Below are positions 5,647-12,623 of a stretch of DNA of 64,000 bases, in pieces. The notes beneath the pieces were generated by a model that was given only the letters and a program-made list of their open reading frames with translations, did no database searches and had not been told where the DNA came from. Source of the DNA: Schizochytrium sp. TIO01 (Eukaryota; Protista; Bigyra: Labyrinthulomycetes); NCBI GenBank assembly GCA_004764695.1, contig SMSO01000005.1, positions 1,798,001 through 1,862,000 of the forward strand, given 5' to 3'. Both the position numbers and the translations under genes were made by a program. Within the stretch, counting starts at the first letter, position 1. Every line of letters begins with the position of its first letter.

Positions 5647-5963
5647 ATGGCCTGCTCCTGTGGAAACCAGTCTTGCCAGGTAAGTAACTAATCTAAAAGC
5701 AGCAGCAGTGCGAAAAGTAGAAGTTTTGAAAATGTCTAGTCAGTGATTATATGCATATGATCACCGTCAGCAGAAGTAAAATGTCTTCATCCTGGAGTCT
5801 AAAACAGCGAATATCTGGTTTGGCCTATGAAGTTTGTGAATATATTGACTAACGTACAGTAACTTGACAATGAATTTTATCTGCCTATGATGAACAGGGC
5901 TGCGGCTCCGGCAAGTGCAACTGCGACCCCAAGAACTGCAGCTGCGGTTGCAGCAAGAAGTAA
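5647..5963 (+). CDS. Small metallothionein MT-A, join(5647..5679,5898..5963), 32 aa MACSCGNQSCQGCGSGKCNCDPKNCSCGCSKK
   Basis: ATG in an AAAAATGG context. Donor CAG|GTAAGT at 5680, branch point GACTAAC at 5847-5853, acceptor AACAG at 5897, stop TAA at 5961-5963. The phase-0 join gives 9 Cys, mostly in CxC motifs, with no aromatic residues. Confidence 0.9.
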
Positions 5964-7352
5964 GAAGTTCTTACTTATCCAATCTAAGCCACAGGTGAAG
6001 ATACTTATACCTTTGGACGAAATACGCCAGAGGGCCCAGGCTACATCGTGAATTCTGCGTGTGCCTCATGCCAATGACTCTAGCACAACCACTTCTGTTG
6101 TTGCCCCTTGTTCTTTGACTCCTATCTCCTATATTCAATCTATTAATGCTGCAGATATTGTGCAGAGCTAAGCAAATGTCATCAATCTATTAACCTTCAG
6201 GAACCTTGTCTTTAGTTGTAATTTTCGAGCAAAACCATACCCTCATAGTTTGGCCTTACCACCACAAGAACTAACAACAGATCGTACATGTTGTGAGGGC
6301 GGTTTCCGCCTGCTCAAGGTGCTCCAGTCCTAGTGGAACTCTGAGGTCCTCAGGTCGATTGAAACTCGATGGCGCACCCTATTCTGCCTCCGCATCCTAA
6401 GCTTGCAAATTATAATATCAACAGTGCCCTAAACAGTATGAACGATATCTGTTGTGCCGATATACTCCACTAGTTGGACCTTTTATTTGGGTAACAAAAC
6501 AGACGGTCACTCATAGTTAGTGGCAACGCAATGATTGGCAAGCAGTACCTAGCAAGGTACATTTTCAATTTGCCCAAATGTAACATTTTGTGCTCCGCGG
6601 GAACGCCTTGAGACTCAGTCGTGAAGCACTCACCCCTGGAATCGTCTCGAACAGGAGCCCTTTCATGTGACTCAGACCGAGCCCGGGCTAGCAGTGAGCT
6701 ACTTCTGCACCCTGATGAACCTCTCCTGAGCCCAAGGTCCTTCTCCAACGCATTGCCTCGAGCTCTTCATACCCACCAGCAGAATAAATGCAAATGTAAA
6801 CGAACCAAAGAAAGTAACGTGTCTTACGATGGCATGGCGTCTTTGAGTGTAATTCCATTTTCTGCGGACTCGAGCCCAGCTCCTTGTGGTTTTGTTTCTT
6901 AAACCTAGCTCAAGTCTGACTCGTGCACGATCTTCATCGCCATGGTCTCCTTAGTCATGGCGATCCTCGACATGTGATCTATCACATGCCTAAGTGGTCA
7001 ACTCTGAGGTTCCACCTTCTTCCTTGAAGCTCTGCGGGTTTTCCCTGCGTTCCCTTTGAATAAGTTTCCTCAGAGGGGCATTTTGTGCGTAAAAGCTGCT
7101 TGATGAAAAGAATATGATATGTGTAGTATGGACAGTGGCGCAAGAGGAGATCAGCGACGACAAGAATCGTTATGTACACCTTTGGATGGACTTCGTTTAC
7201 TGCGAATTTGGCGTTAAATTGGTTCTTTCCGCGCGAAGTTTGACGAGTAAAGAAGATTGGGATATCCAAAACCAAAACGAGAAATCCAACGCACCGACGA
7301 CTGAGTAGAGCCTGCTGGGGAAGAGAGAAAGAGAACTACAACGACGAAGAAG

Positions 7353-7892
7353 ATGACCTGCAAGTGCACCGACTGTGATTGTGGCGATAACTGCAAGTGC
7401 TGCGAGGTAAGTTAGTTACGAAGACGCTGAGAGGGGCTTCTGTTAAAGAAATGTCTTTATATGGAGATGTACCAAGTATCCAAGTTTTAGCTCGAGGAAA
7501 GGTCTGTTGAACTCGAAATGTTCACGCGTACCTGGCAGATCCTGACGAAATTCAATTGAAACAGGATCTTCTGGATGATTTGGTGTCAGCAAAAGCCCTC
7601 GTGAGAGCGTCCAAGATGTTTTTATTTTTGCAGACAAACTCATTAAAAATTGCTATGCTCGAACAAATAATCGATAACACAGTGCTGCAGCGGCGGCAAG
7701 TGCACGTGCCCCCCGGGTAAGTGTAAGTGCTGCTCATCCTCGTCGAAAAAATCTGGTGGATCGTGCTGCAGTAGCGGCGCATCTGGTGACATGAAGGCTC
7801 GTGTCAAGGATAACCTCCCTGCGATTGCCATGATTCTTGGCGCTGGTCTCCTCGTAGGTTTCGCGCTCGGCAAGTCTTCGGCATCCAAGTAA
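7353..7892 (+). CDS. Metallothionein MT-B with C-terminal transmembrane tail, join(7353..7406,7683..7892), 87 aa
   Basis: Donor GAG|GTAAGT at 7407 and acceptor CACAG at 7682. The phase-0 join gives MTCKCTDCDCGDNCKCCECCSGGKCTCPPGKCKCCSSSSKKSGGSCCSSGASGDMKARVKDNLPAIAMILGAGLLVGFALGKSSASK, with 16 Cys in CxC/CC/CxCC motifs followed by a hydrophobic helix. A competing acceptor exists at 7633. Confidence 0.82.
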
Positions 7893-8210
7893 AGGTTTCC
7901 TTATACTCCAGCGATCCAGCCCGCCTTCTTATTCTTCCTCAGGAGTAAGAGACAACGCAGAGAGGAATTTTAACCAAGTGCAAGCTCCAGGAAACGCACC
8001 TTCGCATCCGGCGCTATTACACCATGCGAGGTCAAGTGCTTGCCCTTTCCTCCTTTGCTTTATAAATACTTGTATTGGAACGTATTAACTCATCAATTTT
8101 CTTTCATTTCATTAACTCTACTCATCTATAATTTACTCAAGATTGTCACCGCTGTATTTAGAAACGAGAACATGGCTCGCCCATACTCTGAATCAGCTGT
8201 GCTGCATTGC

Positions 8211-11200
8211 TTAAGCTGGGCGAACTATCGAAACAGGAGAACTGTGATCGCTGGCAGCACTCATTCCAACCGCATTCTCTGCTACTACACAAAACGTATA
8301 TGGGACATCATCTTCCATGAAAAACTCCTCCCTAGGTAAGAGGTCTTTGGAAAGCTCTTCGCTTGTAGCGGGCAGAAATCCAGGTAGAACATTAACAAAA
8401 TATGGTCCAGTTGGGGCTACTTGTGCTAATGTTGCGCACGTACCCTTTGACTCACCATTTTGAAACGCATTGACATGGAAGCGTACAACAGGGTAACCAC
8501 CATCAAAGCTAGGGGGATTCCAGTGTAAACGAACTGCACGGAAGTCTGCACCAAGTACCTTCGGTGCATCAACAGCATTCGGTACTTGTGCTGGCAATGT
8601 TTGAATTGGTGGGCATGGTGTACTTCGTAAGCCCTTACCAATTTCATTTTCCGCCAGTACTGCGAACTCGTATACAGTTGCCGGTTCAAGTTTTTTGACA
8701 ACAAATTGCTGCCTACTTGCATTCACTGTATCCACAAGGATGAAAGGACCTAGCTGTCGAGACCTTATGAAGATATGGTATTCAAATACAGCACTGCCAA
8801 AGGTTTTCAAAGGTGGATCCCATGAAACATTGAGGGTAGAAATACTTGGATCAGAAGCGCGCACGTTGATTGGCTCCCCTGGAGGCCCGCGCTTGACAGT
8901 AAATGGCCGGCTGGCTGGGGAAAAGTCTCCAATGCCTCGATCATTCACTGCACAAACTTGAAATCTGTAAGACTCACCGGACTCAAGCCCTTCAATCGAC
9001 GCGTGTGTAACTTTGCCCCCCACTTTATTAGTTGCCAACGAACTTCCTAGAATTTCACGTCGTCTTCGCCATGCCATTGTTGATTGAGACAACAATGGAT
9101 ATATTTCCTTTTGGTAGATGTTAACATCATAGTCCACGATTGCTTTCATCCATGCCACAAGATGCTGAGAAATTGCGAGCTGAAGGCTGCTCGTGTCTTT
9201 TCCTAGAGCCTCTACCATTGCTACAACATGTTCAGGAAGTGGCAAAAACGCAGGGCGTAAGGTCTGTCCAAGTTCAGCATCACGAGTGGCGAGACGAAAA
9301 CTCCTTACACGTCCTAAAAATTGTTCAGGGTGTCTCATTGCGGATGTTACCTCGCTGAGTTGAGGTAGGGACTTTTGCATAGAAATTTGTGCATTCTGTC
9401 TCTTTTCTGCCTTGAGTCTGTCTTCTTGTGATACTGGTGATTCGGATGATAAGTCTTCCAATGACTTGTCTCCCGGGCTTGAATTGGTCGACTCACAAGC
9501 GCTAGTGTTGTGATCATCGTCATCCATAACATGCATCAGTAAGACCAAAGCGACCCGAAGAACATGAAAGTCTTGGTCAGATAATTTTCCCGCCATTTTA
9601 AACTCCACAACTTGCTTTGTATTAAAGTGCGACATGAGTTCATCAATCTTTTGTGTAGCTTCTGCGACTGCAGTATCTTTGCGCAATATGAGCCCAGCTT
9701 TGTCTGCAAAGCTCTCTTCCTTATCTTCGCAGTCTAACATTTCGTCCACGATGGTGGTAAGCGCGTATCGAATAATAAAAGCTGTCAACGCGCACCCGTT
9801 ATCCCGAGGTGCTTGCCATGCAATAGTTAAGCTTGTTAGAGCGCTACCTTGCAACCATGGTGCTTCTACCATTGGATCTGGTGCGCAAGTTTCAGTCACT
9901 GCAGAAATTGATGGCGCAGACCAGACTCCTCGCCCAAGTTTATTCTCTGCAACAATGGAAAACTGATATGCCATACCAGGCTCCAACCCAGTTACTCGAG
10001 CACTCATTTCAAGCAATTGATCAGCTGTTATACCCTTTCGAGAAGCAGCAGAACCATTGGCCGACAATGCCACCTCAACTAAGACACGACGTTGGTTCGT
10101 CAGGTTTTCCTCTTCCTTAAGTTTTCGACGGACGCGTAACGTCTCTTTAGCACCCAGATGCCGATTCTCATGCAGCCATGTTTCGAGCTTTTCTCGTCGA
10201 GCGGCAGCAGCAGCAAGTTCCCTCGACGCGTTGGCTTTGGCATCTGCCCAAAGTAAAACAATTTCCTCGGAATCTTCAAAATTTCGCGCACGCACACCAC
10301 CTCGTGCACGAATTATAAATTTATTAATATGCGCTCCCATGGAGTCTGGTGCCAACCATGTGATGTCCATTGTTGTCGTAGTAAGGCCACTAATAATTGG
10401 AGCATCAATGCGTCCTGGAACAGCTGCAAGGCATCTCCTTGTAGCTGATGGTAAACTCCACGGCCCTTGCCCATGCTTGCTAATTGCTGCAACACAATAT
10501 TCGTACGTACTACCAGGATGAAGAGCCGTCATGCGACGCTTGAATGTAGTCAGATTCTCTTTCAAATCAAGCTCAACCTTAGCTACTTCGTCGAATTCCC
10601 CAATCTCATTTTCACGTTGCTTAATGACAAAGGCCACCACGGAACTTCCATTTTGCACAGGCATTTCCCATCTCAAAGTCATTTCTGTTGGCTGCGTCTC
10701 TTCGACAAGTGGCGGTGGAGGAGCAAAAGGTAATCCTGAGCCTAATTTCCATGTTCGTATAGTGCCATCGTAGCTGCTTGTGCGAAGATAGTTACATACA
10801 TCAGCCTGTTCTGGGTTGTTTTGGGCTTTGTCATTAGCAAAGCGCCCTCCGTGCAGAAAAGTAAGGTCAACCACAGAGTCTTCATGCCCTCGTAAAGTTT
10901 GAAAAGCACATTGTCCTTCAATATCCCAGATCGTTATTGTTGAGTCCGCACAGCAAGTGACTAAAACATCGATAGGACTATCCTGAAAATCACTAACCAC
11001 CCCTAATGCACAGCTCGTCACCCAGTCTTTGCTTTTGAAGCGACAAAGTAAACGGCCTTCCGGGAATGTCCATACTTTTGCAAAAGTGTCTGAACCACAC
11101 GATGCAGCTAAAGAGTTTCCTTCATTTAGCGTCACAACATTGATCCAATCTCCGTGAGACGGTGGACCATCGCGACCCAAATAATGAGGTTGATGCTCGT

Positions 11201-12623
11201 GAAAGATGCGGATCGCGCCACCGTGACAGTGTGCAAAATCTGGTGTGTCCTCCATGGCTTGCTCCAAAGCATAGATTCTGGTATTCTCCAAGGCATCAAT
11301 AGTTGAATTGTGCTCTTTCCCAGCCTCGTTCTTTAGTTTATATTGCTTTTTGTGATTGGATTTTTTGTACAATGATGCCTGGAATTCTGCCGTACGTAAG
11401 AGATCATCTTCGGCAAGCTCAACTCGCCTCACAAGATCACAACCATCGCAGGCATGATCATACCATTGATGCTCATGTTGCTGTTCAATACTTGCTTTTT
11501 TGTCTGTTGCTGGATACGTGGCATCCCAAAGGCGAATGCGGGGATCTGATGTGTCTCCAGCACTGAGGAGATATTGCCCGTCGCTAGAAATTACGCAAGA
11601 TGTCACACCTCCATGAGTGCCTTTGTATGTATGCAATAGTTCCCCGGTTTCTAATGACCACTTCTTGATGGTTCCATCAGCAGACCATGAGAACAACCAG
11701 TCCCCATGATTGAGTAAGCCATAGACAATATCTGCATGATCCGGTGGTGTGTCTTCGATAGGTGGAAGTTTAGGCAGCTCTGCTTGCCAGTCATCGTCCA
11801 GCTTCTTTTCTGTTCTTGTATTGTCCGAAGACTCTGGTGGGGTTGGAGCACCGATCTGTGCTTTGAATAGCTTTTTCCAATGGTCCCACCCACAACGTAT
11901 ATAACCATCACCGCAGGCATACAAAATTATCCAGCCAAGCTTCTTGTGCAAGCTACCAGTGCGCAATAAACATGATGACAAGACAGGCACCTCGTCAGGC
12001 GCTCGTCCGACAACAAAAATACTTCCTGTACTACGACGGTTACTCTTTAACGAGTAAACAATGAGACGAACAGCTCCATCACCACACGCTGCGAGAACAA
12101 CATCGCGCTTGATAGGTTCAGTTCCTGTCATTACGGGTGGGTCTCCAGCGAGAAGATCAACGGGAACTCCTTTTAGATCTTCCTCATTTAGCCAGATAAA
12201 CTGGCGCACAATAGAACCCACGGTAAATGTTTCAAAGAGTTCGGTACTATCACGCCATTTATACATTGTTGCTGTTCTATGAAATCGAAAGAGTAGCCCA
12301 TCTTCGCGAAGTAATGCAAGCTGCTTTTCTTCTTCTTGTGCGTTATAAGCTCTTTCACGAAGCTCACTTTGTCTTGCTTCCTGAAGAATTTTGCTTGTCC
12401 GGTGTTGGACCTCCAGAGCCATGGAGCGCGCATCCTCACGAGCCATTGAATTTCGCTCATCTTGTTGATTAAGCATGGCCGATCTCTCGAGTGCCCGCTG
12501 CTCCTCGGCACCTGTTCGACCGGCATCTCTTCGCTGCTTTCGAGCAGCTGCTTTTTTCGCCTTCCGCCTGGCACGGCGTGCTTCGCGAGCCTCATAGATC
12601 GAAACCGCAATATCACGTAGCAT
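8211..12623 (-). CDS. Large WD40-repeat plus fibronectin type III protein with N-terminal coiled coil
   Basis: 1470-aa ORF. WD40 motifs: SWSADGTIKKW, SCGSDTFAKVW, TCCADSTITIWD, LRGHEDSVVDL, TSSYDGTIRTW. About five FN3 repeats (e.g. LHPGSTYEYCVAAISKHGQGPWS, LEPGMAYQFSIVAENKLGRG). The 5' end may have a further exon. Confidence 0.9.
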   Translation of the reverse strand: MLRDIAVSIYEAREARRARRKAKKAAARKQRRDAGRTGAEEQRALERSAMLNQQDERNSMAREDARSMALEVQHRTSKILQEARQSELRERAYNAQEEEKQLALLREDGLLFRFHRTATMYKWRDSTELFETFTVGSIVRQFIWLNEEDLKGVPVDLLAGDPPVMTGTEPIKRDVVLAACGDGAVRLIVYSLKSNRRSTGSIFVVGRAPDEVPVLSSCLLRTGSLHKKLGWIILYACGDGYIRCGWDHWKKLFKAQIGAPTPPESSDNTRTEKKLDDDWQAELPKLPPIEDTPPDHADIVYGLLNHGDWLFSWSADGTIKKWSLETGELLHTYKGTHGGVTSCVISSDGQYLLSAGDTSDPRIRLWDATYPATDKKASIEQQHEHQWYDHACDGCDLVRRVELAEDDLLRTAEFQASLYKKSNHKKQYKLKNEAGKEHNSTIDALENTRIYALEQAMEDTPDFAHCHGGAIRIFHEHQPHYLGRDGPPSHGDWINVVTLNEGNSLAASCGSDTFAKVWTFPEGRLLCRFKSKDWVTSCALGVVSDFQDSPIDVLVTCCADSTITIWDIEGQCAFQTLRGHEDSVVDLTFLHGGRFANDKAQNNPEQADVCNYLRTSSYDGTIRTWKLGSGLPFAPPPPLVEETQPTEMTLRWEMPVQNGSSVVAFVIKQRENEIGEFDEVAKVELDLKENLTTFKRRMTALHPGSTYEYCVAAISKHGQGPWSLPSATRRCLAAVPGRIDAPIISGLTTTTMDITWLAPDSMGAHINKFIIRARGGVRARNFEDSEEIVLLWADAKANASRELAAAAARREKLETWLHENRHLGAKETLRVRRKLKEEENLTNQRRVLVEVALSANGSAASRKGITADQLLEMSARVTGLEPGMAYQFSIVAENKLGRGVWSAPSISAVTETCAPDPMVEAPWLQGSALTSLTIAWQAPRDNGCALTAFIIRYALTTIVDEMLDCEDKEESFADKAGLILRKDTAVAEATQKIDELMSHFNTKQVVEFKMAGKLSDQDFHVLRVALVLLMHVMDDDDHNTSACESTNSSPGDKSLEDLSSESPVSQEDRLKAEKRQNAQISMQKSLPQLSEVTSAMRHPEQFLGRVRSFRLATRDAELGQTLRPAFLPLPEHVVAMVEALGKDTSSLQLAISQHLVAWMKAIVDYDVNIYQKEIYPLLSQSTMAWRRRREILGSSLATNKVGGKVTHASIEGLESGESYRFQVCAVNDRGIGDFSPASRPFTVKRGPPGEPINVRASDPSISTLNVSWDPPLKTFGSAVFEYHIFIRSRQLGPFILVDTVNASRQQFVVKKLEPATVYEFAVLAENEIGKGLRSTPCPPIQTLPAQVPNAVDAPKVLGADFRAVRLHWNPPSFDGGYPVVRFHVNAFQNGESKGTCATLAQVAPTGPYFVNVLPGFLPATSEELSKDLLPREEFFMEDDVPYTFCVVAENAVGMSAASDHSSPVSIVRPA

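Follow-up and report, generated by a model that had tools for sequence, protein, structure and literature searches.

Metallothioneins are regarded as soluble cytosolic buffers, and the membrane-attached metallothioneins known to us are mainly engineered fusions for metal capture. Thiol-rich metal-binding segments are found at the cytosolic face of membranes in the P1B-ATPases (plant HMA2/HMA4), in the C-terminal tail of Ctr1 and in the prenylated HIPP metallochaperones. The proteins of the CYSTM type, of which plant CDT1 gives Cd and Cu tolerance, are small eukaryotic tail-anchored Cys-rich proteins and have been proposed as membrane metal chelators or redox buffers (PMC2804304). The diplomonad Cys-rich membrane proteins and VSPs are also Cys-rich, carry a C-terminal transmembrane (TM) helix and have been compared to metallothioneins in the literature (PMC3916229). 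Finally, the bacterial, ribosome-associated ElaB/YqjD proteins (DUF883) end in a Gly-rich anchor helix followed by basic residues.

The gene presented here is located at positions 7353-7892 on the plus strand of a 64,000-nucleotide stretch of genomic DNA (the window) from a thraustochytrid protist. It consists of two exons and encodes a product of 87 residues. The features of the gene and of its two neighbors are as follows; X1 and X3 are public sequencing runs.

5647-5963, plus strand: tandem gene of 32 aa with 9 Cys and no tail, exons 5647-5679 and 5898-5963, read from ORFs and a phase-0 GTAAGT..ACAG intron
7300-7352, plus strand: 5' UTR; transcript contigs start at about 7300 (X3) and at 7310 (X1), with an in-frame TGA at 7302-7304
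7353-7406, plus strand: coding exon 1, 18 codons with 8 Cys (MTCKCTDCDCGDNCKCCE); the ATG at 7353 is the first AUG of the transcript
7407-7682, plus strand: phase-0 intron of 276 nt, GTAAGT...ACAG, spliced out of nearly all transcript contigs
7683-7892, plus strand: exon 2 overall, 69 codons plus TAA (7890-7892)
7683-7769, plus strand: Cys-rich part of exon 2, residues 19-47, 8 Cys, with the conserved motif GGKCxCxPGxCKC
7770-7814, plus strand: Ser/Gly/Lys-rich linker and juxtamembrane segment, residues 48-62; the model has a short helix at 55-61, and conservation is seen at R58 and D61-N62
7815-7871, plus strand: predicted TM helix, residues 63-81 (LPAIAMILGAGLLVGFALG), with G73/G77/G81; the best-conserved segment
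7872-7892, plus strand: basic tail KSSASK (six residues) and TAA stop, from the translation
7893-8120, plus strand: 3' UTR; a run of A behind 8120 in one X1 contig marks the poly(A) site
8211-12623, minus strand: convergent ORF of 1470 aa, its stop about 90 nt from the poly(A) site at 8120

The stretch 7353-7892 is contained in 24 public runs from 13 studies. Of its words, 0.54-0.78 are present in the runs presumed to be RNA, approximately the share that would remain without the intron, which makes up 31% of the query. Three runs from three studies (X1, X2 and X3) and one DNA-like run (X21) were aligned to 6800-8400. Contigs of X1, X2 and X3 carry the junction 7406|7683, with a skip of 276 nt between GT..AG borders (joint 7404->7681, cut +2), while a single 12.6-kb contig of X21 spans the stretch collinearly without a joint. 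The run kinds are guesses ('RNA?'), but spliced contigs can only derive from RNA. The word depth of the spliced contigs is 1671 in X1, 143 in X2 and 14762 in X3, as compared with 6.9, 62 and 105, respectively, for contigs with the intron still present; expression is only poorly reflected in the depth of contigs, but the ratio of spliced to unspliced contigs within one run is still clear. The two-exon gene model and its 7406/7683 junction, put forward in the preliminary description from the letters of the window, are thus borne out by the same splice in three runs from three studies, all of which use the acceptor at 7682. They also agree with the database record P0001 (MMETSP0958/EukProt transcriptome ORF, 87 aa, 'type:complete'), which is composed of the translations of exon 1 and exon 2 with nothing between them. 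The source of this record, MMETSP0958, is presumably Aurantiochytrium limacinum (taxid 87102), a thraustochytrid; the TAXON_ID 87120 given in its header belongs to a fungus and is evidently an error. P0001 was used as the full-length sequence in the searches and in folding.

The mature mRNA is approximately 545 nt long, from the contig starts at 7300-7310 to the X1 contig end at 8120 with its A run. There is no ATG, GTG or TTG between the in-frame TGA at 7302-7304 and position 7353, so the N-terminus of the 87-aa protein cannot extend upstream. Over the reading frame (264 nt, stop included) there is one difference in four strains or runs, 7363 A>C in X21, corresponding to K4T. The intron, the UTRs and the upstream DNA have many differences among the same four runs. 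The gene at 7353-7892 is real and abundantly transcribed. One 1276-nt contig of X2 runs collinearly over about 6165-7404 and is then joined to 7681-7710; it may represent read-through from an upstream gene or a long-leader isoform of that strain.

The N-terminal head of the protein, residues 1-47, contains 16 Cys residues (34%) at positions ranging from 3 to 47, which gives 18% Cys over the whole 87 aa. They form six CxC, four CC (16-17, 19-20, 34-35 and 46-47), five CxxC and three CxCC motifs, and no Cys is found in residues 48-87. Residues 1-54 are free of F, W, Y and H; apart from Cys, they consist of Ser, Gly, Lys, Asp, Thr and Pro, with single Met, Asn, Glu and Ala residues. Such a Cys density is not expected by chance. 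In 20 shuffles of the window the highest counts over any stop-free frame were 5-8 Cys, as compared with 9 in a stretch of 36 residues for exon 2 by itself; with exon 1 the count rises to 16 in 47. Low mass with very high Cys content, the lack of aromatic residues and His, and the presence of CxC, CC and CxxC motifs are the features by which metallothioneins are operationally recognized, and the metallothionein-like composition noted at the outset, with 16 Cys in 47 residues and the CxC, CC and CxCC motifs, is confirmed. In the AlphaFold2 model, calculated from a four-sequence alignment, the Cys-rich part is disordered, as expected of an apo-thionein.

The C-terminal part is quite different in character. 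Residues 63-81 are the sole hydrophobic segment of the chain, with a Kyte-Doolittle mean (GRAVY) of 2.15 and a value of 2.29 for the best 18-mer. A glycine zipper, G73-x3-G77-x3-G81, is located on one face of the helix. The same AlphaFold2 model contains two helices, 55-61 and 63-84, with pLDDT of 66-74. The hydrophobic C-terminal helix with a zipper, proposed earlier by inspection, is therefore retained here as residues 63-81 with G73/G77/G81, within the modelled helix 63-84. The protein has the marks of a tail-anchored protein: a single C-terminal TM segment, a tail of six residues behind it and no hydrophobic segment at the N-terminus, and the homologues described below have the same arrangement. 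In agreement with the earlier statement that a signal peptide is absent, the chain opens with the polar sequence MTCKCTDCDC, and the in-frame stop upstream leaves M1 as the start. A complex prediction for two copies of residues 52-87 gave a score of 0.25, with the mark at 0.32, and weighs on neither side; self-association through the zipper is offered here as an idea only.

Relatives of this protein are few. An exhaustive HMMER phmmer search of 1.84 billion representatives returned P0002 as the sole relative (E 1.3e-6), and two more, P0003 (annotated in NCBI and JGI as 'hypothetical protein') and P0004, came from a profile search over 5.8 billion proteins. These three sequences are close to one another and are therefore counted as one further lineage. 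Their identity to P0001 is 46-50%, and in them neither the Cys domain nor the tail is missing; homologues lacking the tail would have spoken against the preliminary description, and all three retain it. The core common to P0001-P0004 is CKCCxCxSGGxCxCxPGxCKC, and most Cys positions of this shared core are kept in P0002 and P0003. The tail common to both lineages is DN[LV]P...M.LGAGLL.G.ALG, followed by a short basic end. Comparing P0001 with P0003 by sections, the identity is 20/35 in the Cys domain, 5/22 in the linker and 15/24 in the juxtamembrane and TM segments. On these counts the anchor is at least as constrained as the head, and this constraint suggests a role for it beyond hydrophobicity. 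The conserved architecture, a Cys-rich head with a C-terminal helix, can be regarded as practically certain.

At their N-termini, P0002 and P0003 have 23-26 additional residues, rich in Arg and Ala and free of Cys, which the protein of the window cannot have. This extension could be a real presequence or an artefact of the ORF caller in a GC-rich leader. If it is a real targeting presequence, it could complicate the tail-anchor reading for those homologues. The family is known from two lineages only, which weighs against the proposed reading in general. The tail alone (residues 48-87) matched only itself among 5.8 billion proteins. No paralogue was found in the organism's own 64 Mb genome (37 contigs) with the whole protein, the tail or the Cys part of exon 2 as the query, and the gene is single-copy. 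Three freshwater metagenome loci, L003-L005, were considered as relatives and rejected, having in common with the protein only the motif CTCPPGKCKC and no tail. Two of them encode large Lys-rich proteins (L003:2176-4545 and L005:73-1647) with a CPQCG..CTCPPGKCKCKP motif that is partly identical to the Cys core, again with no tail. The vicinity of L004:3001-3060 matched the same short Cys core in a frame that runs off the locus. The proteins of these loci look unrelated and are possibly viral.

Family searches placed the protein in no curated group. At E up to 10, Pfam returned no family when queried with P0001-P0003 or exon 2, and nothing usable with P0004; NCBIfam, a chain search of the PDB (E up to 10) and the ESM Atlas likewise gave no usable match. 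In view of this lack of a match to a curated metallothionein family, to NCBIfam or to a structure, the label 'metallothionein' is taken solely from composition and motifs. The classical metallothioneins of vertebrates, fungi and plants resemble the protein in having a small head of about one-third Cys without aromatics or His, in the CxC, CC and CxCC motifs interspersed with Lys, Ser and Gly, in a high transcript level and in the location beside a second small Cys-rich gene. However, they are soluble, while the 87-aa protein carries a conserved C-terminal TM helix and matches no curated metallothionein profile.

The comparison with the membrane proteins leads to differences of another kind. 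The CYSTM proteins have their conserved Cys in or next to the TM helix and a head that is Pro/Gln-rich and Cys-poor (PMC2804304), whereas the present helix is free of Cys and all 16 Cys are located in the head. Membership in CYSTM (PF12734) was rejected on the lack of Cys in residues 48-87 and of a Pfam match. HMA2/HMA4, Ctr1 and the HIPP proteins share with it a thiol-rich segment at the cytosolic membrane face, a location that is predicted for the 87-aa protein; they are built on polytopic transporter domains or on a lipid-anchored HMA-fold, unlike this free-standing single-pass protein with a metallothionein-like head. The diplomonad proteins are large and of type I, have a signal peptide and expose their CxxC-rich domain outside the cell; in sequence they are unrelated to the 87-aa protein. 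As for ElaB/YqjD, whose C-terminal anchor the tail had been said to resemble by eye, neither the whole protein nor the tail alone matched DUF883 at E up to 10. The only match there was a sub-threshold one, to DUF6520 (E 0.15). Membership in DUF883 was therefore rejected for want of a profile match; the head is unrelated and the likeness, which is generic to glycine-zipper helices, does not reflect homology.

A natural membrane-anchored metallothionein was not found in the full-text literature outside subscription journals, nor in its papers on metallothioneins of Aurantiochytrium and thraustochytrids, so a prior description is not disproven. The papers retrieved instead concern CYSTM, mammalian MT1 detected at the cell surface (immunology) and the diplomonad Cys-rich type I membrane proteins. 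The combination of a metallothionein-like head with a membrane helix is apparently undescribed, in line with the earlier remark that no metallothionein of such architecture was known.

It is possible to compare the anchor with published rules for the sorting of tail-anchored proteins. The tail anchors of the yeast ER have a GRAVY of the TM domain above 1.75, which separates them from the mitochondrial ones (PMC5450235). In mammalian cells a hydrophobic TM domain combined with a low tail charge leads to the ER, while mitochondrial anchors are less hydrophobic and peroxisomal tails are highly charged; a mutant of ACBD5 with the tail charge cut to +0.9 goes mainly to the ER (PMC5450235). In both lineages of the present family the GRAVY is 2.09-2.29 and the net tail charge is near +1, and under these rules the ER or an ER-derived membrane is the likeliest site of the anchor. 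The preliminary description had called the tail moderately hydrophobic and had favored the mitochondrial outer membrane or peroxisomes. The values of 2.15-2.29 for this protein are above the 1.75 divide between yeast ER and mitochondria, and the hydrophobicity together with a tail charge of about +1 fits the ER better. However, a lower helix propensity can favor mitochondria (PMC5450235). The helix contains four Gly and one Pro, which lower its helix propensity, and mitochondria may still be considered as the site on this account.

Taken as a whole, the data make it reasonably probable, in our judgment, that the gene encodes a tail-anchored metallothionein-like protein, which would buffer or sequester Cu(I), Zn(II) or Cd(II) at a membrane surface. 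Tail-anchored helices leave the ribosome only at termination; they are inserted post-translationally and their N-terminal domain stays cytosolic. We infer the insertion route, orientation, metal binding, target membrane and helix packing of the protein in the following way. The helix ends six residues before the C-terminus and would emerge only at termination, so insertion should be post-translational, by a GET/TRC40-type or an unassisted route. The genome encodes a Get3/ArsA-family ATPase, which is compatible with the GET route but not specific for it. The 16-Cys domain would then remain in the reducing cytosol at the membrane surface. Such a location fits a thiolate metal-binding head, which suggests the reading of a membrane-tethered metallothionein-like protein. 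In the head, Cu(I), Zn(II) or Cd(II) would most likely be bound in metal-thiolate clusters, in the fashion of metallothioneins, and the metal would be buffered or sequestered directly at the membrane, likeliest that of the ER or derived from it. The strictly conserved small-residue face of the helix could pack on another helix, belonging either to a second copy of the protein or to a membrane partner.

A more specific form of this proposal, which we hold only tentatively and consider somewhat unlikely, takes the glycine-zipper anchor as a docking helix, by which the head is kept in a homo-oligomer or against a metal transporter of the membrane. In that case the protein would donate or accept metal while resident in the membrane, or act as a regulatory subunit, as the metallothionein equivalent of the small single-pass pump regulators. 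Together with the neighboring soluble 32-aa Cys peptide it could provide a two-tier handling of metal that protects PUFA-rich membranes.

Other explanations have to be weighed against the tethered metal buffer. The head might serve as a membrane-tethered thiol or redox buffer that scavenges radicals and electrophiles at the PUFA-rich membranes of this DHA-producing thraustochytrid, with metal binding being incidental. The high transcript abundance is compatible with such a role, and protection against ROS has likewise been proposed for the diplomonad Cys-rich membrane proteins (PMC3916229). However, the CxC, CC and KCxC spacing is kept between the lineages and is typical of cluster-forming ligands rather than of a mere supply of thiols, and we regard this explanation as unlikely; since both functions overlap in classical metallothioneins, the distinction is partly a matter of emphasis. 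Juxtamembrane Cys residues of tail-anchored and single-pass proteins are common sites of S-acylation. The CC runs at 16-17, 19-20, 34-35 and 46-47, near the membrane anchor, could accordingly be read as a cysteine string, in which S-acylation of the Cys keeps the head lying flat against the membrane; the protein would then function in structure or trafficking, and its Cys would ligate no metal. This appears decidedly doubtful: the nearest Cys, C47, is 16 residues from the helix, the interspersed residues are Lys, Gly, Ser and Asp with no hydrophobics, which is closer to metallothioneins, and there is no J-domain or other partner domain.

The orientation of the protein could also be the opposite one, with the head translocated as a lumenal or extracellular peptide, disulfide-rich or metal-binding, held by the C-terminal anchor. 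The charges around the helix are nearly equal, net +1 before it (K56, R58 and K60 versus D54 and D61) and about +1 after it, and because they hardly differ the positive-inside rule gives no orientation. This topology is nevertheless very improbable, since a signal peptide is lacking, the position of the helix 6 residues from the C-terminus rules out co-translational recognition, and signal-less translocation of a Lys-rich head of 62 residues would be unusual. The least credible explanation, to which we attach almost no weight, is that no functional protein is made and that the ORF arose by chance on a transcript that is abundant but non-coding or mis-assembled. In favor of this are the very small size of the ORF, the lack of a family match and its absence from the ORF track of the window. 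However, the ORF starts at the first AUG and its frame is kept across the splice; its Cys density is above that of the shuffles, a protein with 46-50% identity over both domains exists in another lineage, and the reading frame is poor in polymorphism.

If the tail-anchored metallothionein-like reading is correct, the surface of a membrane would be a place at which some eukaryotes buffer metal by thiolates, and the 87-aa protein would be a compact natural module for the membrane display of a metal-binding domain. It also raises the question of how metal is handed over from buffers to transporters in thraustochytrids. Metal-catalysed peroxidation is a danger to the PUFA-rich membranes of these organisms, which are industrial producers of DHA. 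Genetic tools have been reported for A. limacinum (PMC7200600), so experiments in this species are feasible.

The neighborhood of the gene contains the second small Cys-rich gene, approximately 1.4 kb upstream of 7353 and on the same strand, which has an intron after a short first exon, as in the 7353-7892 gene. Its exon 2 opens with a C.GGKC.C.P-like motif, and the pairwise comparison gives E 0.003 over 10 residues. The 32-aa gene is a probable relative of the anchored gene as judged by motif and exon layout. A tandem duplication in which one copy is anchored would fit this arrangement, and the motif match is suggestive of it. DNA alignment of the 5' regions of both genes revealed no shared promoter block. 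On the other side, the convergent 1470-aa ORF appears by eye to be a WD40 protein with many FN3-like repeats.
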